Positions 8,445-57,719 are shown, counted from the stretch's first letter. The stretch: DNA of 64,000 bases from Styela clava (GCF_964204865.1 NC_135263.1:9424001-9488000), one strand, 5' to 3'. Notes: generated by a model not told the origin, from the letters alone. Program-made: numbers and translations.

Positions 8445-9687
<1,243 letters not shown>

Positions 9688-11690: not shown

Positions 11691-13193
11691 ATGTTCAGTC
11701 GCTCAATCCTCGCATATATATTTCTTATTATGAGTTGCTCATTTCACATATCGGCATCCAGTTCTGTATGTAAGCAAGTTGAAAACGTTTGGGAAAATTT
11801 GTGTTCTGAAGATAAGGAATCATCTGTTGCTATAGAAATCGCTCAGGGAAGACCAGGGAAAAGAGGCCCACCGGGCCAGAAAGGTGACACAGGAAAAACT
11901 GGCCCACCAGGTCCGCCAGGAAATTGGGATTATGAGGAAATTCAAAAGAAATTTGATCGAAAACTTCAGTCAGGTATTGATTTAATAAAAGGGCTGCGCT
12001 TGTAATACTAATCTAATTACCGGAAGACTCTTATAGATTGACTTCTACACACATTATCGGTAAATGTTGACCATTTGAATTTCAGTCGAAGAAAGACACA
12101 ATAAGGAAACAAGGGAATTGAAAGAAAGAATCAATAGAATGGAAAGCATTATGGAAACTATAAATAAGGAAATGACTACTGCAACTCAAGAAAGTAAAGA
12201 AAACTTATTTGTTACTCTGTTAAACAATTTTTATGAAGTATCGTCACGTTTACGTTGACCATAAATTAAAATGGTTATTTTTATCCTGTTACGATTACGA
12301 TGTGCTGTATGGCGATATAATGATTTGCCTCTCATTTTTTGTAATTGATTTTTTTGAAATTTTAAATAGTGCCAAAGCAGCTTTTCCGATTCCGTTTCAA
12401 ATGGACAAGAGTCAATCGTATTATGGATCAATGTTATTTGATGAGTGAAGCAATAAAACTTTTAATTTATAATTACCATTGGAAAATAATACGATTAATC
12501 AAGTCAATTTCTTGAAAATCATATTGGTCCAATAACGTGATGAGGTTACTTCTATATACCAAATCTTTAGGATGTCTACAGAATGCTTACCATTTCACCA
12601 GCGGTGATCAAATAAAGGATTTTATTCGCGTGAAAACAGTCGTGCCAACCATAACATCTATAACCGTTTGTGCATGGCTGAAACCTCCAAAAGGAAGCGT
12701 CGTCAAAGGCAGCTTGATAAGTTATGCAACATCAGCAAGTTCGAATGCATTTTTAGTTTATTTTAACGAAAAAAACGAACTGCAGGTCTTTCTCAACGGC
12801 GAAGCTAACCACAAGACGATATCTGTGCGCTTGGAAACTAAAACTCATTTTTGTGTATCTGCTGTACCAGTCGCCGGCTTTGCTGATGTATACATCAACG
12901 GAAAACTGTTACTCAGACTGAAATCTACAGAGAAAAGAAATCCTGTAGTTGGAGGAGGTTCTTTGATAATTGGACAAGAGCAAGATTCTGTTGGTGGAGA
13001 TTTTGCAGCATCACAATCGTTTGCTGGCACTATTGAAAGTTTCATGATGTGGTACAAACAGCTAGATTCCAATCAAATAAAAGATTTATATGAAAACAAG
13101 TGTCCATGCTACAAAAAGGACACAAATGCTATTGATGGCAAATTTCTAATCGAAGGCAAAGTTCAATCTGAAATCAAAGTCTGCAAGTACTAA
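11691..13193 (+). CDS. Secreted collagenous pentraxin: signal peptide + C-x10-C + 9 Gly-X-Y triplets + coiled-coil neck + pentraxin domain; exons 11691-11973, 12086-12193, 12571-13193 (337 aa)
   Basis: Exon 1 MFSRSILAYIFL..CKQVENVWENLC..QGRPGKRGPPGQKGDTGKTGPPGPPGNW; exon 2 VEERHNKETRELKERINRMESIME; exon 3 ITVCAWLK..LISYAT..HFCVS..YING..GGSLIIGQEQDSVGGDF..QSFAG..MW, a pentraxin motif set. Both introns are phase-1 GT-AG and the frame is open to TAA. Confidence 0.88.
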
Positions 13194-13316: not shown

Positions 13317-14257
13317 CAGGGTGGTCCAAGATTGCGAGGTTGTCGGGCCGCAAAAACTTTTGAGGATGCCTCGCGGGCCGCAGTCGGAGAAAACCCTAAA
13401 GTGATCGAAACATCGGGAGTTTGCTTACTTTGAATATATTTGAAAATGAGAGTTTATCGTTCTAATCAGATTTTTAAGGAAGATAAATAACGCCTTTTGT
13501 TATTTTAAAATTGCTTCCCGAGAAATTCCGTGGTATTTTCGATATCTTTTCTCATCTTTGGTTTTGTAATGTCTTAAAATTAAATTCTTATGTGACAGAT
13601 AATACATGAAAACACACCAGACAATGTGGTTTACGTTGTTGTGGGCAAGGGAATACGTTTCCTCCCAGTTTACCTCGATCACCTTTTTTACACTCATTGT
13701 ATGATAAATTGTTATATTTGACTAATTTTATGACTTGAAATGGCCAGGTGCTATTGTCAAAGAACGACCAAGTCCGTCTAAGTTGGGACTCCGGAACCAG
13801 CCTAAAAAATTGGTTAGTACGGCGCCAGGTCAGCTCTGTGGATCGTCACTGCTGTCATATGGCCAACGCTTGAAAATAGAGGAGTGTTTTTACTAAATTG
13901 AAGACACTAAACGTCTCTCCAAATGAGGAGTTACTTGATGCGAGCTTAAGGTACGAAGTTCAGATAAAAAGCGCTACTCGTCTCATCGGCTTGGTCCTGT
14001 CTGTACAAGACAATTCATTCTCCTTGTATACCGATCACTGGACGTCTTTCCCATATTGGCACCGTCTTGCCGTTTATAGATACAACGTTGAAATCTCATG
14101 ATTTTAACAAACATCAGTCCCGACATGGGGATTAGGAAAAAGGCTATTCCCGGTTAGAATAGTTTAAAAATAATTTCTACTAATGGTTTAAACATTGATG
14201 CACGCTAAAATTGTTCTGCGGGCCTCACGAAATGTGTCCGCGGTTTGGACCACGCTG
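13317..14257. mobile_element. hAT (Charlie-like) non-autonomous element
   Basis: Termini CAGGGTGGTCCAA / TTGGACCACGCTG. Subterminal GCGGGCCGCA motifs are shared with the 26674 element. Degenerate TSD GCTTAT(A)G. Confidence 0.75.
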
Positions 14258-15879: not shown

Positions 15880-16712
15880 GGGTGGCTTACCCACTTTGCG
15901 GCCATGACCTATCTGCGACCATCAACTTCATCGATTAAATTAATGCCGAAAAAATTAACGAACCGCGACGATATTTCACACGCGTTATCGTCCACTTATC
16001 CCTCGGAGCTCTGCGAAATTACACTAAAATGCGGCCACAAATAAAAAAGTTACGACCGAAATCCTGACCGAAGAAAAAAAACGGACCATTTTACCATGTC
16101 GCCAACTACCCATTGTTCCCTCAAAGAAGCTTGAAAATTCATACAACTATAAGAGATAAAGAGATGAAACTTGGCAGGTGGGTAGAGTTGTGTTTCTTTT
16201 AACCATCTTTAAAGTTTCGCGTTTCTACCTTTAAAGGAGGGGGAAGTAGGGGGGTGCGCATTTCCAATACGTCAATAAAATCTTTGTCAACTAATTTGCG
16301 ACCACCGTGTTTTTGTCTGTTTGATTGCTGTGATGCGGTGCTTTGTTTATAATTTGAAGAATTTTGTTTGAAATAACCGTGTTCTTAAAATATATGACGG
16401 TCAGAAATGCAATTAGAAGCCCATTTTTTCACGCATGGCTGCGTATGCCCTAGTCTCGACGCAGCAGAAACGATGTTCAAGGCTTGAAATCCGTGATCGC
16501 ACACTGGTCGTTCGGTCGCAAATACGTCTTCAGAGTGTCGTACTTTGGTGGTTTGTATAGCTTTAACCCCTGGTCGTAGAAAGTTAATTCGAAGTTCAGC
16601 GTGTAGAATAAATGCCAATGCACCTACGGTGGAAAAATTAACGTGCTAGAAATATTGTTTTTTGTTTTATAGCGGTTTGAATGAAATCGTCCGCAGACTG
16701 GCTACACCACCC
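15880..16712. mobile_element. Unclassified non-autonomous DNA element (833 bp) with TA target duplication, inserted in BEL gag
   Basis: Imperfect TIRs GGGTGGCTTACCCACTTTGCGG and (reverse complement of right end) GGGTGGTGTAGCCAGTCTGCGG, with TA on both sides. Removing the element plus one TA restores gag ...IYLEN-YILNNGLDQ in frame. Confidence 0.85.
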
Positions 16713-17872
16713 TATATTTTAAATAATGGACTTGATCAACATGTGGCAAAATTACACCTGACTCAGGTTGTGGATAAATTGAAATCATGTGACATGATTT
16801 ATCGCCAATATTTGGACTCCTGTGTTAAAGAAGCCGACATTAGTTACATTTCCAAACGGTCAATATCTCATTTGTCGAAATCTAAATCTTCTTCATCATC
16901 TTATAGAAGACTGGAGAAATCAAGAATGTTAAAACTTGAAGCATTACAAGAAAGAGAACTAGCGGCGCAAAAGCAAAGATTAGCAGAGATGAAAGCAAAG
17001 TTTAAAGAACAACAAGCTCAACTGCTTGATGAACTGTCAAGTGACAGAGACTCTTCTACCTCCAAGTCAATTTTGGATGTTGACACCGTCATTTCAGCAC
17101 AGGATGTCAAATTTAGCCACTCAACTGAAGTGAGTCAGAGACCTAGTTCAGTTCCACTTTTGTCTAACAATAATTTGGAAAATGCAGGTATACGTTCTTA
17201 TTTGAATTCGTCTTTTAATGTTTTACAACCATCGTATTATCCTTTATCTACTGTTAATGCAGTTCAGTCTTCAACCCCATGCAGTGTTGTAGAGTCTAAC
17301 CAATTTTCTAATGCAAATATTTCACAGTTGCCATACAGTGCACCTAATTTTGTTGACAATAATTTTTCTGCCATTATACCTACCCCTGTGATTAGCACAG
17401 CTGTTATTACTGTCCCTGATAGGTTTACGGGGCCGGTGTATTCACAACCTATAATTTCTGTCCCACAGCGGCTCATTGCCCCAGCTGATACTATGTCTTT
17501 TGATTACAATAGGCCAGACATATTTTCTCATGTTAATGTAACTATGCCTGTTGTATCGCAGGCCCATACTAGTGCTTATTTTTCAACATTTTATAGTAGT
17601 TTTCCACAGGCTGGGCCAAATACTATTACCACTGTTAGTAGTTTGCCTCCAGGCCCTGTTTATACAAACTCATCTCGGCAGATAACATCAGTGTTACCTC
17701 CCTTAACAAGACCTGTAGGACCATACTTACCTCATCCTACCATTTCAAATGCCTTGTGCACAAATACTGCCACAATTCCATCTTTCATACCTCCTTATAT
17801 GTCAAGCTCACAATTACCTCACCCTACCGTTATGAGACAACCTTCCTTACCTTCCCCTAACGTTATCCATCA

Positions 17873-19058
17873 TCCAGGGACGGTCGCTGCGCTACCCGCG
17901 AGGGGAAATGTAAGAAAGAGATTTGAGTATAAAGGAGCATATGTTTCATTATGAGTTTGTTGGATGCATCAGGGTCGTTGCGCCGGACGAATGGCGGAAA
18001 TTCGTCCGGCGCGTAGCCCCCAGCCACTTTGGTTCATTAAGTAGTTTAAATAACACGTCATAAACTGATCACTCTTGATGAATGTCGATTTTTATCAATT
18101 TTGAGGTCCGTGATCACTCGACCGTGACGAAATTTTTTAGGCATAAACTTCACTCCAACTACCTTGTACACCCCAAATATGAGACCCCCAACTATTACCG
18201 TTCTCGAGATATGGCAGAAAATCACTGGACCGTGACTGAAGGCTACTAGAAAAAAAATTCCGCTGATACGCGATTGGAATAATTTTTCTGATCATGCCCA
18301 TGCCTTTAGATTATTGATAAGACCTTCCAGAAGCCGGCAAAAGGCCAAAATCACTAGACCGTGACGGAGGCATGGGAGCAAAAAAATTTTCTTAAAAAAG
18401 TATTAAACTAAATTTTCTCAACCTACCTATGTATTTTTTTTTCTCAATATCTCAAATCTTAAGCGCAACATTCCGAACTCACTGGGCCGTTACGGGGAAG
18501 GGGAATCCCCAAAGTTCGGGTGGTAATATATTCTATTAATTAGTCCCTTTGATATTTAGGCATCACTTTGCCCGAAAACCGATTCCAAGTGCTCCTAATC
18601 GCCCAAAAACCATATTACCTAAGTGGGCGTGGCTTTCCACACGTTTTCTCACCACTGAGGGGGCGGTGGCGGTGCCCCCACCCCCAAAAATACTTGGAAA
18701 AATTTCCAATACTCGGGCAAACACTTTCTGGCCCCGGAAACAGAGGCAAACGGCCTCTAAACCCCAAACTCACTCTTGCGTGACTTGACTGACAGCCGAT
18801 TGACCAATAAGCAGCTCCGGGCCACTAAAATCCCGTTTTGGCCCACTTCCTTTGGCCCGATCGCTCCCAAAAATTTTCTGTGTCAGTTTGGTAACTACCC
18901 CCCGCTTCATGCCAAATTTCGTCAGGATCGGCCCGCCAGTTCTCTGGGAAATGGTAATTCAAGTGCTCTCACCTAAGATACTTCGTACCAATGACTTTCG
19001 TGCAACGAATTCTGACTTCAACTTTGCATTCGCACTTTTAGTGCTCTATGTTGCCTGA
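17873..19058. mobile_element. About 1.19-kb non-coding insertion in BEL gag with internal tandem subrepeats (possibly Helentron/HINE-like)
   Basis: Flanked by the direct repeat CCATCA (17867-17872, 19059-19064); excision joins ORFs 16662 and 19048 in frame (PNVIH-QAASKDD). The unit TCACT.GACCGTGAC recurs at about 18114, 18222, 18351, 18478. Terminal hairpin GCACT-TTT-AGTGC. Confidence 0.65.
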
Positions 19059-22000
19059 CCATCAAGCTGCCAGCAAAGATGATTTGTACCTTCTGGGAAG
19101 AAATATTCAACAAGAATTCCGCTTGCCAGCATTGGATAAAGTAGAATTTGCTGGTGATCCATTAGAGTATCATGCATTTATAAAATCTTTCTATAACACA
19201 ATTGGACGTCTCACATCTGATCCTTCTACATTGTTGGCACAATTGTTTGCTCACTGCAAAGGTGAGGCATATGAAGTAATTAAGCACTTGCGAATGGCTG
19301 ATGACCCAGCACAAGCATTTCATGCAGCTAAGGACACTTTAGAATTTCATTTTGGCAATCGATCACTGATCATCAGCACATTTATGAAGCAACTTACTGA
19401 AGGACCGAAAATTCGTGTAAATGACGTCAAAGGACTTTGCAAACTATCATCACAGATGCGTAACTGTTCTATTGTGTTTGACAATTGGAATGCAGGGAAT
19501 TTACTCGATGCCCCAGCATATCTTGTTGCTATCTTTGAACGGTTACCTCCTAATATGCGTACTGACTATGTCATGAATGGCACATGGACTTCATTCACAA
19601 TCCCGTCATTCAATCATTTGCTGAAATTTATTGAGTCTAGAGCTCGTTTGTACAACACATTTTATGGTCGCACTCTGGCAGAATTGGTGACAAAATCATC
19701 TGGTCATAAAGGATACATTAACAAGCGTCCATCGAAGTTTTCTACATTTACCACTTTAAGTACGCCAAAACCGGAACCTAACTTCAAACAAAATTACAAC
19801 AAAACTAATAACTCTGGCAAGAATGGCAAATCTGCTTTGTTTTGCTATCTTTGTAAAGGCGATCACATTCTGATGCGCTGTAACAAATTCCAAGAGAAGA
19901 GCATTTCTAACAGACGACAATTTGTAAAGGACCAGTCTATTTGCTTCAATTGCATGTCATCCAAGAAACATTTTTCTAGCAGTTGTCCTTCAGAGAAGAG
20001 GTGTCTAAAAGAAGGGTGTGGTGGACTTCACCACACTCTGTTACATTTGGAGCAGGTAGCCAAGCAGCCTGCGTTGCATCAGTCGCGTTCTAAGGAACCA
20101 TTACATGCACCTCAAACTGAAACAACCTCTGTGAATTCTATGTCTGTACTCAACACTTTGTGCCCTGTTCGACTCATGGCTGTTGCTGTTGAAATACATT
20201 TACCTGACGCAAGTGATAAGAAGAAAACAATTGCTTTCTTGGATCTAGGATCTCAAAGATCATTTTGCTCTACTCGTCTAGCGAAATCTATTGGCCTTTC
20301 TGGTAAACCAGAGCATTGCATGATCCGCACTACAAATGGTGTTGCTGTTCATACTGGAGAAAGAGTATCATTTCGCCTAAATGGCGTGAATAATACTAAC
20401 ATTGTTGAAGTACACAATGCTTTAACTTTTGACAAAATTCCTGACGTCAGAGATTCATTGCCAAAGCCGGATATAATTGACAAATATCCTCATTTGGATG
20501 GTTTGAAGTTCCCAGATATTGATGGCGATGTTGAACTATTAATTGGGGCAGATACCTTGGGTAATTGTCCATTTACTGATTCCCGAGTCGGACCTCCTGG
20601 TACTCCAGGAGCCTTGCTTACATGTCTTGGATGGTGTCTCTTTGGCAAAGATCCATCAATGAAATCTGATAATAATTCCCTAAATTATATTAACACTTCT
20701 GTGCCTATGATATCTGATGTACAGAATTTACAAAGTGATGTAGCTGTGAATTTTATTTCTACTACTCTTCCATTGCTATCATTTAATGACACTTCATGCG
20801 ATACTTGCATGTCACCTCAAAGTCTTCCAGAAGAAGATCACAATTTGCAGGAGGAAGAAGTTGCATGTGATAATTGCAAAATCATTACCAAGCCGGAAGT
20901 GACAGATTGTCAGAGGACGGAAAGCAGCAAATTGAATGGTTGTGATTTTTTCTTTATTTGTTCCACATTGCATGATGATATCCTGGATGAGAGTGATGTT
21001 AACCGTGAAATTGCTGTCTGTCAAACTTGTGGAAATGATTTTGCTGATATGAATGCAGATCCATTAACAACACAACCTCCTTTGGATGATGAACGAGCTA
21101 CACAAATTATGAATGATACTTTGAAGCGTGTTGACGGACGATTGCAAATTGGTTTATTATGGAAATATGATGATATTAAATTACCGTACAACTATAACAT
21201 GGCTCTCAAACGTCTCATGTCTGTCAAGCGAAGAATGGAGAAGGATGCTGAATTTGCTACAAAGTACATTGAGAAACTGGATGAATATATAAAGAATGGA
21301 TATGCTGAACAGATACCAGAAGATGAATTGGCACCTACAGAGAGAACCTGGTTCATTCCACACCATGCAACAAGACAATCGAAGTTTCGTGTTGTCTTTG
21401 ACAGTTCAGCAGAGTTTGATGGAAAATCACTGAACAAGAATTTACTATCAGGACCTGATTTCAATAACTCATTAGTTGGAGTTCTTCTACGCTTCCGTTT
21501 GAACCCCATTGCTGTGTCGTGTGACATTCGACAGATGTTTCACAGAATATTGGTAAAGCGTGAAGATACACAATCTCTTCGTTTTTTATGGTTTCCTACA
21601 CATGATCTTACAAAACCTGTTTCTCAATTTAGAATGCTATCTCATGCCTTTGGTACTACCTGCTCACCTTCTATTGCAACCTTTGCCCTACGAAAGGTTG
21701 CAGAAGATAATTTATCTAATGCTGATCCGACCGCTGTTCAATGCATTTGCTCTAATTTTTATGTAGATGACGGATTGTTTTCAAAGGATACTGTAGAGGA
21801 GACTTCTACACTAGTTCGACAAACTATTGATTTACTGGCAACAGGAGGTTTTCACTTAACTAAATTTTTAAGCAATGAACCAGAAGTTCTACAATGTGTT
21901 TCTGAGGAAGACAAGGCTCCCGTTGCTCATGCTCTGGAACTAGGCGATGATGCGGTGAGTCGTACTTTAGGATTGAATTGGAATGCAGCCACTGATCAAT

Positions 22001-24549
22001 TTGTTGTTATCGTCAGAATTCAGGAACGTCCTCCTACTCGTCGTGGCATATTATCAATGGTGTCGCAGATATTTGACCCTCTTGGGTATGTTCAACCATT
22101 TGTACTTGCAGCTCGTATCATTCTGCGCAAGATCTTTGTTATGAAGAATTTCAATGGGATGATACAATTACTGGCCCTCTTAGAGACAAATGGGAAGAAT
22201 GGTCATCTAAATTACCTTCATTGAATGGGATATCATTTTGTAGATGCTACAGACCAAAAGGATTTACTCCATCTACTTTTCAGTTACATGTATTTTGTGA
22301 TGCAAGTTCTTTTGCATATGGAACTTGTGCTTATTTGAAAATAATTGACGATACAGGAAACATTCACACTGCATTTGTTAAAGGCTCGTCAAGGGTGGCT
22401 CCAAAGAAAGTTGTAACGATACCACGTCTTGAACTGACTGCAGCGGTTGCTGCTACAGAATTGGCGAGATGCATAAAATTGGAATTGAATGAAGTGATAA
22501 CAGATGTATTTTTCTATACGGATTCAATGAAAGTTCTTCGAATGATAAACAGTCGATCTGAACGTTTCAAAACTTTTGTTGCTAATCGATTGAATACAAT
22601 TCACTTGCTTTCTCAACCTAGACAATGGCATCATGTTGACACTAAGTCTAATCCAGCAGATATTGCCAGTCGTGGACTAATGCCTGACAAGTGCCACAAA
22701 GCTGATTGCTGGTTTAAAGGACCTTCTTTTCTGAGAAGCAAGGAACCATTGAGAAATTCACATATTTCTGAAACAATTGAGGACTCTGAAATATGTTCTG
22801 AAGTGAAAGTTAATTATATTGAGATTTCCTACAAGGACAAGAATTCTACAATACAACAACCTGGACTTATGCTGTTGTTGAAACGTTACTCTAAATTTGA
22901 AAGACTTGTTTCGTCTGTGATATGGCTTCAAAGATTCAAGACTTACATGATTGGGAAATTGCTACATCGTTCTGGTTCTCCAGTTACTGGTTGTTTTACT
23001 GTTGCAGAACGGGAAAATGCAACTATAGATATTGTGAAACTTATACAAGCAGATTCGTTGTCTGCTGAGCTTTGCTATTTTAAAGATATGATGAGTTCGG
23101 GCCCTCCACCTTCTGACAGAAAGAGACTTAAATCGCCATTTGCTAAAGAACTTTTGCAGTGTAATCCATATGTGGCTGATGGCATACTTCGAGTTGGAGG
23201 CAGGCTTCGTCAATCTGAATTACAACCTGATCAAAGGAATCCTGTAATTTTACCCCCATATCACCATGCCACTAGACTTCTGATCGATTATTACCACTGT
23301 GAACATGGACATTGTGGAAGCAATCAAGTACAGGCTTATTTGTTACAAAATATTGGATATTGCATCTTCAGTCAGCGGTGGCAAAAGTTCTTAGAGAATG
23401 CATGCCATGCAAGATTCGATCTGCCAGACCTGGTAAACAATGGATGTCAGATATGCCTGCTGTTAGGCTTTGTACAGGAAATAGACCATTCTTTCACAGC
23501 TTCGTTGATTATTTTGGTCCTATAAAGGTCAAGTTGGGCAGAAGCGAACATAAGCGTTACGGAGTTATATTCACTTGTCTTTCTACTCGAGCAATTCATC
23601 TGGAGGTTGCAGAGAGTTTGGATACCTCTGCATTTTTACAAGCCTTTTTTCGTTTTGTCTCGCGACGTGCAAGACCAGCTCACATGTACTCTGACAATGG
23701 TACGAATTTTATTGCTGGAAGTAAAGCTCTCAAGGATGGAATTACAATTGGAATAAGAAACAAATTGACAATGCTCTTGCACAAAAGGGAATTCAATGGC
23801 ATTTTTCACCACCTCTTGCAAGTCACCAGAATGGAGTTGTTGAAAGATTGATCAGAGAAGTTAAGAAGATTCTGAGGAATATGCTTGATGATAAACCATT
23901 AACCGATTATTCACTTTGGTCTTTTCTGGCTGGAGTGGAATCCATCTTAAATGACAGACCCCTTACCCGAGTAAGTAATGATCCCAGAGACCTCCATGCC
24001 CTGTCACCCAATTCTATTTTACTAAGTAAATTAGATCCTGATCTACCCCCTGCTGTTTTTCTGCGAGCTGATGAGTATAGACAGGGCTATAGACATGTCC
24101 AGCGGTTGTTGGATATGTTTTGGCAGAGATTTACTAGGGAATATTTACCTCTGCTTCAGAAACGCTCAAAGTGGTTTCATCCCTCCCCTAACCTGAAGAC
24201 TGGTAACTTAGTACTTATGTGTGATGACATACTTCCCCGTGGTAGTTGGCCAATGGCTGTTGTGGATGAGGTTTATCCTGGTAGACTAGGCATTGTGCGT
24301 AGGGTGAAGGTACGAACCTCTAAATCTACGTTCATGCGTGATGTTAGGAAGATATGTTCACTTGAACTTGATTAAATGTCTAATTGATGATTATTCATTT
24401 TGTTTCTGTATATTACATTTCACATTTTTCCATACACAATTTCGTATTCATCATTTTCCTATTTGGTTTACTTATATGCTTTGTGTTCGGCTACTTCGAT
24501 CACCTCTTTTATTGAGATAATTATAAGTCTAAATTATCTGGGGCCGGAA

Positions 24550-27701: not shown

Positions 27702-28967
27702 ATGTGTCGCCAAATTTTTGCTTTGGTATTAGTCTGCTTAGTTCAGGGACCAACCGCAGCTTTTGATAATAACCCCGCATGTCAACAAATTGAAAACTTT
27801 TACCAAACTCTTTGCTCTCGTGACGGCACACCAGCAGGAGTAACAACTAATGTTGCCTCTTATCAAGGACGTCCGGGCAAGAGAGGTCCGCCAGGACAAA
27901 AGGGTGAAGTTGGTGAAGAAGGCGCATTGGGTCCTGCTGCAATGGTGGATTATTATCGTATAGAATCAGAAATTGAGAGAAAAATTTCATTAGGTAATTA
28001 TTTCATTGCATTAGCTTTGTAATTTAGAATTTTTTATTGCACATTGGCAACTTCCCAAAAGACGAATAAAGTCGTTTTTACGTTTTACAGTTCAAAGACA
28101 ATCGAACGTAAAGTTGAATACGCTGACTGCACAAGTTGAAAATTTGAAGGAAAGAATCAGAACATTGGAACTCAGACAAGGTAATATAGAGTGATAAACT
28201 CAAAAATGAAAACCAATATTAACGAGTGAATTAATAATTTAATAATGTTAAAATTCAATCTGATCGCGAATATTTCGGCTGTTACTTTTCAGGTGTATGT
28301 GATATCAAATACGACGGAAAATGTTTCTGGGTCGAAGTTCGCGATCATTGGTTTTCTGGATATGAAGAAGCAGCCGCATTATGTGCAAAAAAGAACGGAG
28401 CTCCGGCAAATATTTATTCTGCAGAACATTTCAACTTAATTATGCCTTATTTGCGCACAAAAATAATGGCCGGAAGAGAGTACATTCATCTTTGGCTTGG
28501 GATGCGATACAACCCTCGGGTATGATTTGTATAAAGCAAACTCGAATAGAATAGTGACTTCAATGAAATATCAACTATGTGCGTGTGTTATTAAATCCTA
28601 GCTGAATATTTCTACAACATTATTGCAACATTACTAGCAGGCGAGTTATAACAATTCGTTATATTAAACTCGACCTACAAATTCACCAAATATGTGAAGC
28701 TATGAAGCTTCAGAATGATCATAAAACTTTTTCCAGGTGCAGTTTTACGAGCATTTTAATATATTTTTATTTATTCAGACCAATTTGTTGACGCTGTCTG
28801 ACGGAAGACCTGCATTGTTTAAGCAGATGTACCCAGGTTATCCTACTAAAAACGTTAAATATACACACATGACAATCGTGCAAAGAATTCCATCAAGTCT
28901 TACCAACATCGGTTTTCATAATTTCGACCCGATTTTACAAAGGGAGGGCGCTCTTTGTGAAATTTAA
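27702..28967 (+). CDS. Collectin-like protein A (signal peptide, C-x10-C, 8 Gly-X-Y, neck, C-type lectin-like domain); exons 27702-27993, 28091-28180, 28293-28519, 28779-28967 (265 aa)
   Basis: MCRQIFALVLVCLVQG..CQQIENFYQTLC..QGRPGKRGPPGQKGEVG; CTLD CDIKYDGKCFW..YEEAAALC..PANIYS..HLWLGM..ALCEI*. GT-AG junctions, AATAAA about 30 nt after the stop. Confidence 0.9.
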
Positions 28968-29177
28968 TGGATCAATGTTATTTGATGAGTGGAGCAATAA
29001 AACTTTTAATTTATAATTACCATTGGAGGATAATTCGAGTAATTTTGTAGAATAGCGTTATTGTAAATATGTATGTGGTAAAAGCATAAGAATGTACTTT
29101 TATAAATAACAAAAATAAATAGCATGTCAGAAATTGTATAAACTGTCATGTTTTTGAGACTAAGTAGAGGTTGCATG

Positions 29178-30633: not shown

Positions 30634-33600
30634 TTATTCTCCAGTTCTTCTTTTCCTGGCGCCAATCATTTGTTGAGATATTTTATTCCTTCTGTATGCA
30701 AGTCCTACGAATGCCATCATATCAATAAATAATGTGGTTGGGTTCAATTTGCTGATTCCAAATTCACTTGTAGAGTAGTCTTGGGGAAATGCATGATGAT
30801 AGTTATGAAAACCTTCACCTGTTGACAAAAAGTTATAATAAATATATAAATCAAATGGTAAATAAACGATATTCACAATCATCAGCTTGAATTTTGTTTA
30901 AAGTCGTGTTTGTTTCGCGTTGGTCTTGAGATAATAAAGTAGGACAAGGAAGGGCGGCATTTCCAAATCTTCAAAAATGTTGGTTTCGAGCTCATCCTAA
31001 TATTTTCTATTCTCAGACAAGATATGAAGAGAATTTTAGTAGACTGCAATCTGACGCATAACATCTTTTAGAGTGAATGACTTACCCATAGCAAAAAAAG
31101 CAACAATTTTATTTTCTCTGGGATTGATGGAGACATCATATGGTCGAGATCCCAACAAATGTGCAAAACTATTCACTGAGAACGCCGCATTGAGCAATAC
31201 ACAATATCTTGCAACGCATGCGCAATATGAATTCCAGAGTGTCTCTTCCCACATGTAGTACGGAATCAAAGTCGGTATGACAAAACACAGTATCAGGGCC
31301 ATAGGAATAAAATACCTGTTGCAAATATAAGTAAATAGTACTGAAGGTGTGGTATGCTGAGGTGAATAAGTCTATTGGAAATAAGTTTGAATTTTGCTCT
31401 TTCTAGCCGAGCCTATTTAGTATTAGGTAGCCTATAATGGTGGTTCCGGGCAATTTATACGGTTCCATTACATTTGAACCCACGTACATTTGAACCCACA
31501 ACAATTGCATCTGCATACTATTGCACCTGTGGAATTTTGTTTTTTGTTTTACGAGTATTTGAACCCATACTAACCCTAACTCATGGGTTTTAGCACCCGC
31601 ATATAGATTGAACCCGCGGATATACACATGGGTTCAAATGTACGTGGGTTCAAATGTACGGTCACCATTTATAGGAATATCTAACAATAACTGCGAGAGA
31701 AAGTGCGATACAACCATTTAACCTATCGCAGACAATAGTCGAGCTAAGACGTGTTTCAACTTGTCATTCGTGGTCACCTGCGCTGCCACATTACTACAGG
31801 ATCCTCTTTTAAGTCATCAAGAGAAAGCTTTTTTCCATTTTTTATTACATCTGGATGTTTTTTAACCAGATGGCAACCAATATGACTGAAGAAAAGGCCT
31901 CGCCTGGCATTGTGTGGATCGCCATCTGTTTCTGAACATTTGTGATGCGTTCGATGATCTCGACACCAATCATAAATAGGAACCTGACGTAAACATAAAA
32001 GTGTGTATATGAATTATTCTCCTGTGAATATGAATATCCATATATACAAAAACACTCCGCGAAATAATGAACATTACAGTTGCTTATAAATTTTGCTTTG
32101 TGACTTGGCGAAAAGTTGGGCATTAGGGTGAATGAGAGAGTTTTCCAGGTATGTGGGGTAATGTGTTTTAAAAAGTACCAAGGCTTAAAGTCGACTTATT
32201 TATGTAAGTATATCTAGTGATATCTCCGAGTTTCATAATGTTATTTTCAATGGCCTCACTGTTGTTACACGTCAAATACTCACTGGAAAATAAAGACGAG
32301 TCTATTACTCCCAAGTCGCGATGTATTTTATCATTGTCCAATAAATATTTATATATTTAATCTAGTCAATATACGTTGAAAGTTTTTTCAGGTATATTAT
32401 TTCTTGATTTGGTATCATGAGAATGCTCAATAGACGGGTTTAGCTTTGTGGTATTCATTACATATCCAAATAAGACATAGGAAATTTGTTTTATTTCCAA
32501 TAAAGCCAGTCGATCACCCACCTGCCATGCCATACAGTTCACAATTGCCAGAAAAATTCTGAGAGGTAATTTTGCTTTATAGGATCTATGACTCCACAGC
32601 CTATGAGCTCCTGCAGTTACGCCCAGACCAGAAAGTATATACATGACTGAGGCTGAAAATTATTATATATTTTCTAATTTATAATCTAAATTGGAAAATG
32701 TTTGAAAAGGATAGCTATGCTTCATAACATTTTTCCACTTATGATATATATTTATAACTAGTTGATAAATTTATGACAAATATACGTTTTTAAATAAATT
32801 ATATAACTATGAAGAAATGCATCTTAAGCAGAAGATCCAATATTCACATGCCAGTAACTTAATCTATTTCAGCAATGTTGATCTGTTATCAGTGCGATGT
32901 TAGAGATGCGATGTTGCAAGCCTAGCTGATTTTTTTTATCTGACAATTACTCGAAAACTAAGAAAACTGGAATAAATAAATTGTCAACTGTGCTAAATAT
33001 ATATATTGTGTGTTTTAGTTGAAAAAAGACAACAGGTCCCTTTACTTTTAGTTTACTGTTTCAATAGTCTAAGTGAAACTTGAACATACCTAAAAAAATT
33101 GTGTTCATCTTAAACGTGTGCACGCTTGTCAAAGTATAAATGAATATTATATGAACATATAGGAGGACTATTATTTTCTTCCATATCAGATCATTCCAAT
33201 AATTTCTTTTGCTGGGTTCTGAAAAGAATTACAAAAAGTTTTTGTCAATATTGAACAATAAAAATTAATTCATTTTCAATGAACGTCTTTATAAAATTGG
33301 TATTTAGCAATTCAACGTTTGTCAAGTTATAATGCATGCAATAACGCATGCATGAATCACAGGAAGCACGCCACTGATAACTTTATTTAGAAATTAAAAT
33401 GGCTATTACACCGTAATGGAATAAAAATAGGTAAGTCAAAAAAACAATCCAAGTATTCTATCAGTTAAGCCTAGCTTATGCAACAGCCGTTGTTGGCGAT
33501 GGAAACCGTAACCAATCAAACGTCCTAACAACGGCGAAATTCAATCAATTTTTCGTAACTGTTACAATAGCAGAAAAATAATACCAAATTTGCTTTTTTG

Positions 33601-38636: not shown

Positions 38637-40377
38637 ATGATGATAAAGTTTAAATTGCTTAGCTTCTTAATGCTTTTTTGCTGGTCGACAGCATCCGCCA
38701 ATCCTAGTGCAGGTTGTGTGCATGCCAAGCAGTTATATCAAACCCTTTGTTCCCAAGATGACACACATGCGGAAATCGAACAAGGTCCCCCGGGAAAAAG
38801 AGGGCCTGTTGGACCGAAAGGTGAAATTGGGAGACCAGGGCCTATCGGGCCTCCAGCTGCTGTGGACTACAATCGCATTGAAACAGAAATAGAGGAACAA
38901 ATTTCATCAGGTAGGACAATTATTTATATTATTCTAAATATGCTTAACATCCCTGTGGACAACCTCATTGAATAATAAATGCAAAGAAAGTAGTGTATAC
39001 TCCTAGAATCAGACTTTGTCATTTTCTGGTATTTGGAGCGAAGAGATGCATTGATGTTTTTCAGAAAAAAAAAGCGGCTTATACTCCACATCTCAAATTG
39101 ATTAGGTATTATTAAGATATACCGAATATTAAAAACAAATAAAAAATTATCCCTTTGTATTTTCAGTTCGCAATCTTGCAAACTCGAACGAACGAACTTT
39201 TGTCTTAAAAATTGAGAAACTGGAAGAACGAATCAAAATTTTGGAAAGTAGAGAAGGTAACATAGTTTAGTCCTGAAAAATTCTTTATTGAAACAGGCAA
39301 ATATAAAACGGAGTAATGTATTTTTAATGAAAACACTGCCCTAATAGTTTGTAAAGTCCGCTCAATTGGTTACAACACCCTGGCAAGTCAATGGCCGAAA
39401 GTCGATTGCCAGACTAAATAGTGAAACAAAAGAAGATATATATATAGCGCAATCAAGCCTCTAGAACTGCTATTAGAGCGCCACACCCGCAAATATGTGA
39501 TGACAGTTGATTACACTAAAGTGTGTGATTTATTCAAAAAAAATCACATTAGCCTTTTCATTTTTTTTTGAGCAGAATACAACTCAAAAAAACCTAAAGC
39601 AATCCCAATATTTCTCACGTTTAATACCAGGCGCATGTGAGATAAAGTACAATGGAAAATGTTTCTGGACAGTGACTCTGGACCACTTCGTACCTGGTTA
39701 TGATAAAGGGGTCGCCATGTGTGCAGAGCGTAATGGATCACCAGCAAATATTTATTCTGAGGAACATTACAATATCATCATGAGATATCTTCGATCGAAG
39801 ACATTGGCAAAGCTGAGTGCTATTCACCTATGGATAGGAATGCGAACAAATCCAGCCGTATGTATCTCTCTTTCATGAATTTTAGAAAGTTTAAGTGATA
39901 AAAATATGGACCTGTCTACATAATAGTATTTGGGTAGTAATTGGAATCTTCTTTTTGAAGTTTATGGTAATAAGATCTTCACTGTTTTGACTACTTGATG
40001 TGTCCATTTGAATTGAAAAGGGATTTATCATTTTTAAATGATATTGACTACAAAAAACTGTAGATAGTGTAAGTAATAATGCACACACAATGTCTACACA
40101 TGACTAAGATTTTACTTTTAATTGTTAAATATGGCCAAATATGTTTAGTCAAGCTACGTTATGTGACAGGTAATAATATTTTTTTCAGACTGGAACTGTT
40201 ACACTTTCCAATGGAAGTCCAGCTCCATTTATGAAATGGTATCCAGGAAGTCCCTCAAAAGATCTTGCTAGAACACACATGACCATTGTTCAAAGAGTTC
40301 CATCGTCTAATCCATCCGTTGGTATTCATAACTGGCCACCAACAGCAACCCGAGAAGGCGTACTTTGCGAACTATGA
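38637..40377 (+). CDS. Collectin-like protein B; exons 38637-38910, 39167-39256, 39631-39857, 40189-40377
   Basis: Signal peptide, CVHAKQLYQTLC, QGPPGKRGPVGPKGEIGRPGPIGPP, 90-nt neck exon, CTLD CEIKYNGKCFW..HLWIGM..KWYPGSP..GVLCEL*. Exons 2-4 have the same sizes as gene A; AATAAA downstream. Confidence 0.9.
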
Positions 40378-41395: not shown

Positions 41396-43516
41396 ATGAT
41401 AACGTTTAAATTGCTCAGCATCGTGGTGATTTGTAGCGCGCCGACAGCATGCTCCGATTCCGGTCCAGATTGTGTGCATGCTAAGCATCTATAGCAAACA
41501 CTTTGTAGGCAGACAGAAATTGAACAAGGTCCCCCGGGAAAAAGAGGGCCCGTTGGACCGAAAGGTGAAATTGGGAGACCAGGGCCTATCGGGCCTCCAG
41601 CTGCTGTGGACTACAATCGAATTGAAACAGAAATAGAGATACAAATCACAGCAGGTTTGACGATGATTTTTATTTTTCAAAGTAGGTTGGAAATACTTGC
41701 GTGTAACTTTTTAATAGTATATACCTCGAGAATAAATTTATCATTTGCTGTGAGGGTTTTTTAATTGGAAAGAAGATAAAAATTTATCTTATGTGAATAA
41801 AACCTCAGGAAATTGACCATGAAACACAAACCTCAAGTAGATTTCAATCATTCCCCTTTTTATAATGCATTTTGATATGATTTTTAAACTCTTCTTTAGG
41901 TATTTTTAGTATATAGCTAAGGATATAAAACAAATCAAAAGTAGTCATGTATGATCTTGAATTATCCTGTCATTTTATGTATTTTTTACAGTTCGCGATC
42001 TTGCAAACGTAAGAGAACGAAATTTTGCCTCAAAATTGGAGAAGCTGGAAGAACGAATCAAAATTTTGGAAAGTAGAGAAGGTAATCTACATGTAATAAA
42101 AACGATTAATGATACTATTTTAGTGTTATTTTTATTTGGAATGGAGCATTAAATATCGCTCAAAAAGATTTTCTGATAAAGCAGACAAGTATAAAAACGG
42201 AGATGTGGATTTTGAAATGAACAATAGTCCGCCCAATTTATTGGGCCATGATATGTCAGCTACCAAACGTCGATTGCTATGAAAGCGAACAACATAAGTT
42301 TCACTGTAATGTCAGCGCAGTCTATCTGATTGAATATTCATTAGTAAAATATGCCTATAAAACTATACAATGACACAATATTATACTAAACTGTGTAATC
42401 TATTCAACAATTTTCACAATAGCTTTTTTCAACTTTTCTTCATACTTGTCTGAGCAGCAAACGACTCAAAAAATGGAAATCTATCCTACTATTTCTCACT
42501 CTTAACCAGGCGCATGTGAGGTAAAGTACAACGGAAAATGCTTCTGGGCGGTGACTTTGGACTCCTCTATTGGTTATGATAAAGGAGTAGACATGTGTGC
42601 TGAGCGGAATGGATCACCAGCAAATATATATTCTGAAGAACATTACAATATCATTTTGAGATAACTTCGATCAAAAATATTGGCAAAGCTTGGTGTAGTT
42701 TATTTATGGATAGGAATGAGAACAAACCCAACCGTAATTATACTTACCTATAAGAAATGTCATAATATTTAAGTGTTATTAGATATTTCAATGGTTTTTA
42801 AATGCCGTAATTATAAATTTCCTCTCTGAATTTCCTCTTGGCTAGTTTTCTAAGTTTTGACGTAGTCCCGTAGTATGTGAACCCAGATGGCGTACACTGG
42901 AACGTAGTGTGTGTACCAGGTTAGGGTTAGCCATAATTTCAGGTACAAGTCATACGGGAGTCACTTGGCCAGTCCCCGAACTCGCAATCGAACTAAAATA
43001 AGGAACATTGGAATAAAATTATGGCTTAACCCTAACCTGGTTCACTTACTATGTTCAGGTGTCCGCCGTCTTGGTTCACATACTACGGGAGCGCCGTTTT
43101 GACTACCAAATTTATTTTTGATTTCCTGTTTACGTAGCCGAAAGAGATATCATTTATAGTTGTCAAAGAATCTTTCCTATCGAATATTTCGTACATTGTG
43201 GGCGTTTTAACACCATATAGTCTATAACACACGAAGAAGATTTTCAATTGAATCATAACTGATTTGCGTCAATGGCCAATCCCACATTGTTACAATATTG
43301 GTAATATATAATGTTTTTTTATTTTAGAATGTAATCGTGACACTTTCCAATGGAAATAGAGCTCCTTTTATAAAATGGTATCCAAGATATCCCTCTAGAG
43401 ATTCCGATACAACGCACATGACAATTGTTCAAAGAGCTCCAACGACTAATCCATCCGTCGGAATGCACAATATACCACCAACATCAACCCGAACAGGCGT
43501 ACTTTGTGAATTATAG
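41396..43516 (+). pseudogene. Collectin-like C, tandem duplicate of B with two in-frame stops; exons 41396-41654, 41992-42081, 42510-42733, 43328-43516
   Basis: Colinear with B. TAG at 41492 and TAA at 42662 replace Tyr codons of B; splice sites and frames are otherwise intact. Confidence 0.85.
42859..43096. mobile_element. MITE with about 80-bp TIRs containing GGTTAGGGTTAG
   Basis: TCCCGTAGTATGTGAACC...CCAGGTTAGGGTTAGCCATAATTT versus AAATTATGGCTTAACCCTAACCTGG...GGTTCACATACTACGGGA. A shorter related hairpin element lies at about 48380-48475. Confidence 0.8.
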
Positions 43517-53366: not shown

Positions 53367-56300
53367 CGAACGAATGAGGGAATTTTCAGTTTCGTTTTCT
53401 CATTTAGTCGAAAGGACTGGAATGGTTTTACAATTGTTGCTGCAATTTGAAATCGTACAATGTTTTTATTTATATTTTCAACTGTCAACTGCTTTCATGT
53501 CAACTGCTGTTACAAAAACATTCTAGTCAGCTAGGGTTAATAAGTTACATGTAAATATTGTGATTTGCACATTTTGTTGTCGAAAAAAACTTTGTCTATT
53601 TGCATAATTTTTATATAATTTCAACTACACTATGAGTTGCATAATTACTAAAATAACTGCCGTAATTATAATTTGTGACCAAAGTTGGAAAACGAGCACA
53701 AAATGTCATCAATAGCACCAATATTAGTTTCAAACTCGTACTATCTGTACTGTAGTCACTTACTGATCTACAGAGCACATAAATTCTGGCATGGAATGTT
53801 TTAGATCGGTACATTAGCTCGGATTTTTTAATGTGACAAGAGTATAATATACAATCATTAACTTACACGCGACTTTTGTCGTGAATTCTTTTTTGTAGGT
53901 TCGAATTACTATTTAAAAAAGTTTTATTACGCTGGACAATAGTCAATTAGACTGCTCATTTTGTCCATTTGGAGTTAGACAATTGTACAGTGTCCTATTT
54001 TGCACAATTTATTTCTCTGTTGTGGTCAGACTTCGTAAACGTTCTCTTTTATTGTGAACATTTTTTTTTCTGTTGTGGTCACACTTCGTGAAAAGAAGCA
54101 GTGCTATTTCAGAAGCCGTGCTAAATCATCAGTAACTTTGCCAACGTCGGTCACTGATTTATTGAATAGTCTTAATTGCATTACAAAGATTCGGCTGATT
54201 CCTCGTAAAACTACCGTTTTTTTCGATAACTGAAAACATGTTTAAAAACATTTAGCCCGCGCATTTTATTAGAAATCCGTGCCATAAATTTTGATTCCAT
54301 TTGTTACAGTTAGTTCAAATCCTATCTACGGCTCTATTTATAACTTTCTTTTTGTTTTTAATTGATATTTACTATTTTTTACTTGTTGTTCATGGAATGG
54401 GAGTCCGATATCTTCATGCATCTATGTGCTTTCCTATGAGATTCTTGCTGTAAGCTAACAACGAATTACTAACGTGAATCTAACTGGAAAATTTCAACGA
54501 GTTCAAGTTTTGGTATCTTGATGTTGTACCTTTGTTGTATTCTTATTTTAAAATATAATTGTCAAAGATATTACATATATATATACTGTACTTGTTTTTT
54601 TGTTTAAGGGTAGACCCGAGTAATGGTTGAAAACGCATCAACAAATTTCCTAATGTTTGATAAGTTATAGTATTATATGTAAGCTTTCCCCTCAATAATT
54701 TCCGTCAAAAACTAATTTTTAAATTTTCGTTTTAGCATAAAGACGGCAGTATGCAATAATAAATCATTATATTTAAACCCGCCTTGTTTAATGAGGCGAA
54801 CGCTACGTTGATGGCAATGGGATAACTATTATAACTACATCCTTCTACTGGGTGATAATAGGGTAAGGGATCATTTGTACAAATCGGTTTACTAATTGCA
54901 AAACATTAGAAAATATAGGATTAAATCGAAGACGAGATGATAGTATCATTCTTTCAAAATTATACATAAAGTAAATAATTGATCCTAATTGCAATACATT
55001 AGTGTCGTGTACAATGTTGTCACATTTTAGTTAGATATAATTCCAAATGCATTTACCAAGAAATCTGGGAAGCGAGCGACTGAAAGGATAGTCGACTATT
55101 CAAATTTTACCAAAACCAGCCTAAAAATATCAGGAAAAGCCCCTTTCAATCTAATTTGAGTTTCTTTTACCAGATGTTTCGACTTTTTTTAAATATTTAC
55201 CTAGAAATGATTAATGCATTTCAGCTAAGCTACGATTGCGAGATGCTTGGCTTTTAATTATATTGAAAATACTGTATTATTATAGCATTAGTCAGTATCC
55301 GGAATTTATGATAAACTTTACAAACCATTGATGAGGTAAAGCCGAGGTAACGGAGGTATTTTTGCACAACCAAGAAAGGATCATTTTTATGAAAATTATA
55401 TTAATTTACCTCGTCCAACATGTGGAATTTGTAATTAACTTTTAGCTAGGTTGCGTACTTCAAGTATATAGCGTGTACGTGACATGCTACAGGCAGGTCT
55501 ATCTATTGTCGTTGTTTGTCAAGGCAGTTCAAGCGAGGCTAAAACAAACTACTGTCTATCGGCATATTTCTGATTACGGTTTGTCTTTAGCAAGCGTTTG
55601 AGACAAAGTCCACCCGTGCTTAGTATTTAAACAAGTCGTGCGTGTCGGTTGACAAACTAAACGAGTGTGTAAAAGCTAGCCTACATAGTAAGCTGTTAGC
55701 TGAGATGGTACCCACGCGCAGTATAGATATAGCCTACTGAGGATACGGCAAATACATAATATTTCGACAATATAAAAAGAGTTAGAGTAGGGCAAAGAGG
55801 GAGGTTATATACATATTCCGCACATTAGCATGTTTACTTGAGAAATTCGTTTGCCGCAGCGATTATCATGCAGATTGAAATCATAAAAGGGGAACCCGCG
55901 CTACATGCAGTTAGAATGAAATAGCCTACATTTGCGAACTTCCAAGTACCAAATGCATGTATATCAATAATCTCATTGCTCAAAAAGCTACTGTCTCGGT
56001 TTTCATTTTACGTGGTGAGCTGTGAGTGTGAACCAGCGTATAATGCATTACGACCGTCAGTGAGTATTATTACAAAATATCTCTTTTGTAATAATGTAGA
56101 AAATGAAATTCACGTGCGCAAAAATTCGCGGGGTTAACAACTTTTTAAATTACAGTATTAGTGACCAATATGCCGTTATTTTGTGTGCAGAAAAAGCTAG
56201 TCTAGTGAATAGCATAAATATTTTAGAGAGCTTAGCGTCTGGATTTATCGGGCGAAACTTTTTTAGACACTCGAAGCTATCTGAATTCATATGGTTGCAA

Positions 56301-57719
56301 ATGTCCGTCATCAGCAAAATTGGAAGTGATAAAATACTTGGACCACTGGACTCTGTTCACTATACATGTTACGAAGTGGGTCATACATGGAATAGTTCTT
56401 GTCTGTTAACCTATCTTGACACGTTTCATAAAGCCTTCGCATATTCTCTAAAGCTCTATGCACCATTCTATGCGCTTAGTGCTTTGTGGAAATTTCGAAA
56501 AAAGACAACAGACAAAAGAAAATTGATGAAAAATGCTCTTTTATCAACTTTGAGATCAAGTTTTTTTCTAGCAATGAATGGAACCTACTTCATAATTGTA
56601 TTCTGCTGTTATGGTAAGATCGTTGGAAAGTATCACGGCATTGCCGGTTTTATCGTTGGAGCAGTGGCATCATTTTTAAGCATAATTTTAGAAAGAAGCT
56701 CGAGGAGAGGAATGCTTTCAATTTACTCGTTGAATCTCGCCCTTGAAACTTTGTTTAAAATGTCTGTATCAAGAGGGTTTGTTTCTCGTATTAATGGGGG
56801 TGAAGTTTATCTATTCGCGTTCACAAATCTTGTATACATGCGCCTATTCAGATCATCGAATTTACCACCTGTCATTCAATCTGTTGTTGAAAAGATAATG
56901 GGCAAGGAAGAAACCATGACTATTTTACCAGGAGAGAGGAGGTTGTCATCTGATACTTTAGTTGACAATACCAAGCTTTCACAATCTTTCCTTCGTGCCA
57001 AAAAGCTGCACGATTTTGTCTTGAAGAACCTTAATAGGCTTGGTCCTAATACGCCCTGCTGTAAACACAACAGCAGTTGTTCCGTGTATGTAATTAAAGG
57101 GACATTAAAGTATTTTTCTCTTGGCTGTGCGTTTCATGTACTTCTTAAGTACCGGACAATACTACAATCAATACTTACCAGAAACACATCACTATTAAAA
57201 AAAGCATTTTCTGATCTTTCTTTAGCTAAATTTTTTTGTGCGTATGTGGCCCTTTTCAGAGTAGTTAATTGTTCTCTTAGATGGATGACATCCAGTGATA
57301 ATCCTAAACTTTTCGGAAGTATTGCAGGCCTTATATCCGGATTCAGCTCTGTGTTTTATCCCAGTACCGGCATAGCAATGTATGTTTTTACCAAATTACT
57401 TGATATATTATGTATGAAAGCTGTCTCTGCAAACTGGTTCCCACGTATCCCCAATTTTGATATAGTGGTGTACAGCTTTAGCTTAGGAATACTATTCCAT
57501 GCTGCTGTATTCGAGCCTCACAACATTCGTCCTTCTTATTGGAGTTTTTTAAAAGCGTTGAGCGGTTATAAATTTCCATTAATGTTCAGAAAATTATTAG
57601 ATAAATTTGGTACTGAAGCTTCAAGAATGTATCCAGACTTTGTTCCGGATTTAGACCCAAAATATGTGAAAACAGAAGAAGTCAAACGAGTTTTGGCGCA
57701 GTTTGGCAAATGGCGATGA
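56301..57719 (+). CDS. TMEM135: Transmembrane protein 135 (peroxisomal/mitochondrial), single exon
   Basis: MSVISK..HYTCYEVGHTW..SC, YAPFY, RSSFFL, SIILERSSRRGML..Y, C.H..SC, LFHAAVFEPHNIRPSYWSFL. The likely start is ATG 56301 within ORF 56103-57719. Confidence 0.92.
   Translation: MSVISKIGSDKILGPLDSVHYTCYEVGHTWNSSCLLTYLDTFHKAFAYSLKLYAPFYALSALWKFRKKTTDKRKLMKNALLSTLRSSFFLAMNGTYFIIVFCCYGKIVGKYHGIAGFIVGAVASFLSIILERSSRRGMLSIYSLNLALETLFKMSVSRGFVSRINGGEVYLFAFTNLVYMRLFRSSNLPPVIQSVVEKIMGKEETMTILPGERRLSSDTLVDNTKLSQSFLRAKKLHDFVLKNLNRLGPNTPCCKHNSSCSVYVIKGTLKYFSLGCAFHVLLKYRTILQSILTRNTSLLKKAFSDLSLAKFFCAYVALFRVVNCSLRWMTSSDNPKLFGSIAGLISGFSSVFYPSTGIAMYVFTKLLDILCMKAVSANWFPRIPNFDIVVYSFSLGILFHAAVFEPHNIRPSYWSFLKALSGYKFPLMFRKLLDKFGTEASRMYPDFVPDLDPKYVKTEEVKRVLAQFGKWR

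Follow-up and report, generated by a model that had tools for sequence, protein, structure and literature searches.

The stretch analysed here comes from the genome of the solitary ascidian Styela clava (64,000 nucleotides of C18, GCF_964204865.1, NC_135263.1:9424001-9488000; hereafter the window, with positions counted from its first letter) and contains LOC120340922, an intact three-exon gene on the plus strand at 11691-13193. Its predicted secreted product of 337 amino acids joins a collectin-type stalk to a pentraxin head, and three collectin-like genes, denoted c1, c2 and c3, are located downstream (Table 1). The window was searched exon by exon, and the full-length analyses were performed on XP_039265256.2, the NCBI entry named 'uncharacterized protein LOC120340922', to which the three exons are 100% identical (tblastn); in particular, exon 1 corresponds to residues 1-94, with a 100% match. 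The older version of this entry, XP_039265256.1, named 'C-reactive protein-like', differs solely by S17P and V334A and is intact as well. Both introns of the gene are of the GT-AG type, and both are in phase 1. Given the sequence organization of the locus, we consider it very probable that the gene and its architecture are real.

The protein begins with a hydrophobic, signal-like leader (residues 1 to ~22), followed by Cys27 and Cys38, which form a C-x10-C arrangement, and by nine uninterrupted Gly-X-Y triplets at residues 53-79 (11847-11927; GRP GKR GPP GQK GDT GKT GPP GPP GNW). The collagen stretch scores 23.8 bits with the Pfam Collagen profile, under the cut-off of 27.2, because it is short. 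In the AlphaFold2 (AF2) model, the neck is a single helix of 50 residues (81-130; predicted local distance difference test score, pLDDT, 84-92). Exon 3 matches the Pfam Pentaxin profile (PF00354) with 102.7 bits (E = 2.7e-29; cut-off 25) over residues 155-307 (12642-13100), corresponding to profile positions 22-170 of 194. The head model (pLDDT 73-90) yields NPTX1 (6ype), CRP (1gnh) and SAP (1sac) as the top Foldseek matches, with template modelling scores of 0.77-0.79 and E ~1e-13; at the sequence level, the best PDB matches of the head are NPTX2, NPTX1, CRP, Limulus SAP and SAP. The CRP cysteine pair C36-C97 is kept as C164 and C225 (alignment to 1b09), and both residues are invariant in the ascidian alignment. 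The original prediction, made from the DNA alone, had described the paired cysteines, the nine triplets, the coiled-coil neck and the pentraxin domain; the NCBI match, Pfam and AF2 locate all of these elements where they had been placed.

The stalk belongs to a family that is represented in the same window. Exon 1 of LOC120340922 has paralogues at 27708-27986, 38664-38909 and 41411-41653 (tblastn E = 1e-15, 7e-14 and 3e-11, respectively; 35-40% identity), in agreement with the earlier claim that it is paralogous to the first exons of the neighbouring collectins. The neck exons of c1, c2 and c3 share the motif LKERI..LE with exon 2, and each of these genes carries two head exons homologous to the C-type lectin-like domain (CTLD) of P0159, an S. 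clava protein of 268 amino acids that combines collagen with a Lectin_C domain; for example, the CTLD exon of c1 matches P0159 with E = 3e-20. The single CTLD exons of the neighbours are under the Pfam threshold, so that the collectin-like call for these genes rests on the homology to P0159, the CTLD of which has modest support itself (23.8 bits against a Lectin_C cut-off of 22.6; flavocetin-A match with E = 0.0026). The N-terminus of LOC120340922 matches P0159, c1 and c2; masking of the collagen leaves the matches to P0159 (E = 1e-7) and c1 (E = 3e-4) in place. Judging by these sequence relationships, the stalk of LOC120340922 is of the collectin type.

Genome-wide, there are more than 80 stalk exons of this type, in clusters on C18, C6 and elsewhere; the large tandem clusters include C18:15.2-16.1 Mb and C6:13.27-13.60 Mb, and nearly all of the collagens in them open with x-P-G-K-R-G-P. 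A stalk exon is paired with a pentraxin exon in LOC120340922 only, in the whole genome. The sequence separating exons 2 and 3 holds no detectable remnant of a CTLD. Within the same cluster, c3 has decayed whereas LOC120340922 is intact.

Table 1. Positions of the parts of LOC120340922 and of other features in the window (ORF, open reading frame)
Feature	Position	Strand	Description
Exon 1	11691-11973	+	Signal peptide, C-x10-C, collagen, start of neck; ends in phase 1, donor GTATTG
P-G-K-R-G-P (P55-P60)	11853-11870	+	Candidate docking motif, Lys at Xaa
Exon 2	12086-12193	+	108 nucleotides, phase 1-1, coiled-coil neck
Read-through of exon 2 donor	12118-12258	+	Head-less stalk ORF ending at 12258, 5' of the stranded AATAAA; possible minor isoform
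Intron 2	12194-12570	+	Holds the 77-nucleotide island 12423-12499 with AATAAA
In-frame ATG	12540	+	Head-only product without a credible signal peptide; possible minor isoform
Exon 3	12571-13193	+	Pentraxin domain, C-terminal CxC...C tail, stop codon
AATAAA	13248-13253	+	55 nucleotides 3' of the stop codon; likely polyadenylation signal, read from the sequence
Dispersed repeat	13317-13480		~165 nucleotides, starting ~125 nucleotides 3' of the stop codon; copies of 84-90% identity on many chromosomes (777 candidates at first look)
c1	27702-28967	+	Collectin-like: stalk exon with QGRPGKRGPPGQKG, neck exon, two CTLD exons
c2	38637-40377	+	Collectin-like, layout as in c1
c3	41411-43516	+	Collectin-like pseudogene; the stalk exon has an in-frame stop at 41492-41494 and the CTLD exon another at 42662-42664
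Small GTPase exon	9328-9687	+	Arf/Arl-family small GTPase, exon encoding the C-terminal half (94.7 bits)
Pao/BEL-type retrotransposon	16662-24375	+	DUF1759, reverse transcriptase, Pao peptidase; frame broken into overlapping ORFs 19048-22224, 22221-23525, 23312-23851 and 23848-24375
Histidine-box ORFs	30634-32644	-	Short ORFs with HRLWSH and HNYHH, putative histidine-box motifs of the kind known from delta-9 fatty-acid desaturases; no Pfam match on two short exons
TMEM135-domain ORF	56103-57719	+	Single-exon ORF, 538 amino acids, TMEM135 Cys-rich N-terminal domain (119 bits)

The genome contains approximately 24 single-exon pentraxin domains, all of which start at the boundary seen in exon 3. 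Among the 18 that were inspected together with 6 kb of upstream sequence, collagen lies upstream of the pentraxin exon only at C2:19964245 (XP_039259462). In the maximum-likelihood tree, the head of LOC120340922 is the sister group of three collagen-less genes at C9:9.39-9.41 Mb (support of 92/89, a branch that is not starred; 42-46% identity). Approximately unbiased (AU) tests reject a single clade comprising every collagen-bearing head (p = 3e-11), and the grouping of the LOC120340922 head with the two stolidobranch heads of the 'C-reactive protein c' (CRP c) type described below yields p = 0.021; the latter value is weak evidence, given that the grouping was chosen after the tree had been seen. 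From the sequence comparison, the nearest relatives of the head are collagen-less CRP-like genes on another chromosome.

The combination of collagen with a pentraxin domain is present in other ascidians. With at least seven Gly-X-Y triplets and a C-terminal pentraxin domain as the criterion, the best 150 of 1764 HMMER hits include six other such proteins from four ascidian genera and one Logan contig: Halocynthia roretzi 'C-reactive protein c' (BAF49232/A4F2Q7; 304 amino acids), S. clava XP_039259462 (296 amino acids), Ciona XP_002121231 (310 amino acids), Clavelina XP_076805675 and XP_076806633, and the protein from the contig. One more Clavelina collagen-pentraxin came from a later profile search; the profile search for the architecture was swamped by collagen words (8000 collagen-rich candidates were scored), and the matches from the ESM Atlas were FACIT collagens. 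Neither the proposed candidate new class nor an unreported architecture is therefore supported, since databases already hold collagen-pentraxins of Halocynthia, Styela, Ciona and Clavelina under ordinary names. We found no papers describing either type of collagen-pentraxin in a search that left subscription journals mostly outside.

In the CRP c-type proteins, the stalk consists of collagen followed by CxC and then by a short helix, and in S. clava, it is encoded in one exon. The S. clava orthologue of 'C-reactive protein c' (C2:19963745-19970802) comprises an exon 1 with a signal peptide, eight triplets (GSQGRPGKRGIKGETGRKGEKGEP), CQC and a short helix, and an exon 2 with the pentraxin domain. 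LOC120340922 has no CxC after the collagen and has three exons, not two; when collagen is masked, its N-terminus shows no similarity to the N-termini of the CRP c-type proteins. Collagen-stalked pentraxins are pan-ascidian, and LOC120340922 seems to be a second case, put together separately on a collectin stalk; we regard such a separate origin from the collectin stalk as likely.

The island in intron 2 provides a further trace of the history of the locus: it shares 93.5% identity with positions 28967-29043, a segment that starts at the last base of the c1 stop codon; these two copies are the only ones in the genome. This arrangement fits a collectin ancestry of the locus. The nucleotide identity between exon 1 and c1 is 54% overall and 42% at third positions, which are thus saturated, and the 3' ends of c2 and c3 are weakly alike. 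On these grounds, a passive relic as old as the duplication can be ruled out, and the island should be either a recent conversion patch or a constrained element. The possibilities of an RNA gene and of a dispersed repeat were rejected as well: there are no Rfam hits, no shared fold and two genome copies only.

The assembly state was addressed by modelling three copies of residues 50-337. The trimer reaches an interface score (ipSAE, interaction prediction score from aligned errors) of 0.48 (0.52, 0.48 and 0.48 in the individual runs), compared to 0.01 for the best of three controls, with a contact agreement of at least 80% and a partner pLDDT of at least 76. The predicted interface is formed by collagen residues 51-79 and the heptad positions of the neck (81-124), and there are no confident head-to-head contacts in the trimer model. 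In the calibration, the mark was reached by 21 of the 30 proteins with structures solved as homomeric pairs and by none of the 23 solved as single chains, a yardstick that is only roughly valid for three copies; furthermore, prior exposure of the predictor to collectin-like structures may account for the pass. The trimeric geometry that had been put forward earlier, along with the suggestion to model it, thus fares well in prediction against controls. The model supports a collectin-like trimer over a pentraxin ring, and in our assessment, LOC120340922 probably forms a trimer.

The collagen of LOC120340922 contains the motif P-G-K-R-G-P and a second G-K-T-G-P, both as read by the original prediction. 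Of 31 stalk exons that were read, one lacks a collagen run; in all 30 others, Gly-Lys occurs at the first or second triplet, and the residue after Lys varies (R, K, S or I). After dereplication to 20 stalks, Pro is found at position -1 in 17 of 18, Arg at +2 in 14 of 20 and Pro at +4 in 15 of 20, so that the flanks of the motif are conserved above any later X or Y position. Within the stalk family, no part is better conserved than PGKRGP, in keeping with a docking partner common to its members. The caveat that X is Arg is true of the sequence; the oddity is eased because Arg is the norm in the stalk family. A furin site at PGKRG was considered and is unlikely, with Pro at P4 and with paralogues that have GKSG or GKIG. 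For the MASP-docking motif as defined previously, binding depends mainly on one Lys, and three substitutions give SP-A the capacity to bind MASP (PMC2856262). MASPs are known in ascidians (PMC5465252), and a gene called MASP1 has been reported to be expressed in S. clava (bioRxiv 10.64898/2026.01.25.701569). The motif of LOC120340922 is, as a sequence pattern, compatible with MASP docking, with low specificity; that the protein docks a MASP is possible but rather doubtful.

Taken as a whole, we attach a moderately high probability to the following scenario: the chimeric gene LOC120340922 would have arisen by head-exon exchange and would encode a secreted trimer, the collagen motif of which recruits a partner of the stalk family. 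The two stalk exons would derive from the local tandem family of collectin-like genes and are spliced in phase 1 to a single-exon pentraxin. Most likely, the gene lost its CTLD exons and acquired a pentraxin exon, in an exchange that would be separate from the older, pan-ascidian collagen-pentraxins of the CRP c type. The product would be a homotrimer bearing three pentraxin heads, with the collagen helix and a three-stranded neck holding the chains together, and Cys27 and Cys38 may link such trimers into larger oligomers. It could function as a soluble pattern-recognition molecule, with the heads binding the target and PGKRGP recruiting a partner common to the stalk family, the best single candidate being a MASP-type CUB protease.

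Several observations weigh against this scenario, beginning with the head itself. The calcium ligands of CRP are D60, N61, E138, Q139, D140, E147 and Q150. In the alignment to human CRP (1b09), five of the seven are kept in LOC120340922 (the equivalents of N61, E138, Q139, D140 and Q150), and D60 and E147 are replaced by Ser and Ala, respectively; the closest paralogue, P0013, has Asp at both of the changed positions. Accordingly, the part of the original prediction concerning the retained GQEQD loop (12972-12986) stands, whereas the full ligand set is not there, and the calcium site, as aligned, is not complete despite the loop. The pentraxin signature H-x-C-x-S/T-W-x-S reads HFCVSAVP, with Trp replaced by Ala and the last Ser by Pro; the lack of Trp had been pointed out before and is borne out by the alignment, in which other ascidian pentraxins vary at this signature, too. 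With two calcium ligands and the signature Trp lost, calcium-dependent ligand binding is uncertain, and the earlier worry over the head grows. Further points of the same kind concern the phylogeny, the gene model and the motif. The head tree is weakly resolved, with 5 of the 23 branches starred, and one origin of collagen followed by several losses may formally account for it. The junction of exons 2 and 3 rests on the NCBI model and on the logic of the sequence, and given the polyadenylation signal in intron 2, some transcripts may stop there and yield a head-less stalk. The Lys motif lies in the second triplet of a nine-triplet helix, a position much closer to the N-terminus than that of the MBL motif, and has Arg as X; a genome scan for CUB domains (PF00431) produced 97 matches among 350 candidates, too many to single out a MASP.

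Three other explanations of the locus were weighed. The gene model could be an artefact, with exons 1 and 2 being a head-less, collectin-like remnant that ends at the intron-2 polyadenylation signal and the pentraxin exon being a separate or dead unit; the AATAAA inside the island, the read-through ORF of exon 2 that ends at 12258 and the in-frame ATG at 12540, just 5' of exon 3, are compatible with such a structure. However, the three exons have remained intact despite synonymous saturation against the paralogues, whereas the true remnant, c3, has stops; no separate signal-peptide exon accompanies the pentraxin exon, and the peptide that starts at ATG 12540, MRLLLYTKSLG, is too short for a signal peptide. 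The splice phases match, the boundary of exon 3 is the same as in the other ~24 pentraxin exons, and both versions of the NCBI protein give the 337-residue product, all of which renders an artefact quite improbable. We assign still lower credence to a single origin, whereby LOC120340922 would be a diverged member of the CRP c type in which gene conversion from the collectin-like neighbours later replaced the stalk. Both types of stalks have a collagen that begins with GRPGKRG, the starred branches of the weakly supported head tree force, by themselves, no more than one change of collagen state, and the island points to movement of sequence between LOC120340922 and c1. Against such an origin stand the lack of similarity to the CRP c-type N-termini outside the collagen, the three exons as opposed to two, the missing CxC after the collagen and the AU tests, which disfavour grouping of the heads; moreover, exon 1 is saturated relative to c1, so that the stalk, if converted at all, must have been converted long ago.

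A larger share of the probability, albeit a minority one, goes to the possibility that the protein is as described and has no link to complement, being instead an opsonin, an agglutinin, or a component of the matrix or tunic, in which PGKRGP would serve a cell-surface receptor, modification or cross-linking of Lys, or dibasic processing. The motif requirement of MASPs is loose, so that the sequence confers little specificity (PMC2856262), and the motif is located right at the beginning of a short helix; in addition, Lys and Arg form a dibasic pair, and with more than 80 stalk exons, bearing varied heads, that carry the motif, the set of MASP clients would be very large. The invariance of Lys in all collagen-bearing stalk exons that were read, combined with the variability of the next residue, fits a single critical Lys better than dibasic cleavage, and the Hyp-Gly-Lys-X-Gly-Pro context is kept in most of the stalk copies. 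Both features count against this reading.

The broadest conjecture that can be entertained is that, in ascidians, pentraxin heads on Lys-bearing stalks constitute a fourth class of complement-initiating defence collagens, next to collectins, ficolins and C1q, with direct docking of MASP and cleavage of C3 without C1q. Such a design would have been built twice in S. clava, within a broader phase-1 exchange of CTLD, discoidin and pentraxin heads; we consider this conjecture unlikely. Vertebrate pentraxins reach complement indirectly, via C1q or ficolins, and collectins and ficolins dock MASPs through a lysine in the collagen. If the conjecture were true, a pentraxin head placed directly on a MASP-docking stalk would short-circuit the vertebrate arrangement, and the recognition heads of defence collagens would be freely exchangeable in tunicates, the closest living relatives of vertebrates. 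Even without a link to complement, the locus is a clean case of exon shuffling: different heads are attached in phase to a stalk module that exists in more than 80 copies, with a decayed sibling and a stranded 3'-end fragment adjoining. Furthermore, LOC120340922 points to an apparently undescribed pan-ascidian family of collagen-pentraxins that is hidden under misleading database names.

Comparison with known systems places LOC120340922 between several families. With collectins (MBL, CL-K1, SP-A/D) and its S. clava neighbours, it shares the signal peptide, the Cys-rich N-terminus, a short collagen with Lys at Xaa of X-Gly-Lys-X-Gly-Pro, the trimeric alpha-helical neck (as predicted), the phase-1 intron layout and the location in a tandem cluster. 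Unlike collectins, it has a pentraxin head instead of a CTLD, only nine triplets and no kink, with the motif in the second triplet and Arg as X. The ascidian CRP c-type proteins resemble it in the order of collagen (7-16 triplets), short helix and C-terminal pentraxin domain, the last with a tail of the CxC...C form, and most of them have Gly-Lys-X-Gly; however, their N-termini are unrelated to collectin stalks, CxC follows the collagen, the S. clava gene has two exons, and the heads do not group with that of LOC120340922. As in the long pentraxins (PTX3, NPTX1/2), an N-terminal coiled coil would multimerise a C-terminal pentraxin domain (best PDB matches 9lad, 6ype and 8s50), but the long pentraxins are without collagen or a collectin-type Cys-rich N-terminus and assemble as tetramers, octamers or hexamers, not as a collagen trimer. 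CRP and SAP share with LOC120340922 the pentraxin fold, the Cys36-Cys97 pair and the GQEQD loop, whereas they are cyclic pentamers that lack a stalk and signal via C1q, and LOC120340922 differs from them by Ser in place of D60, Ala in place of E147 and Ala in place of W100. Finally, the design logic is that of ficolins and C1q, namely, a collagen stalk with a Lys docking site, a globular head other than a CTLD and trimers that bundle; these proteins have fibrinogen-like or gC1q heads, longer collagens and proven protease binding, compared to which the motif of LOC120340922 is a candidate derived from sequence alone.

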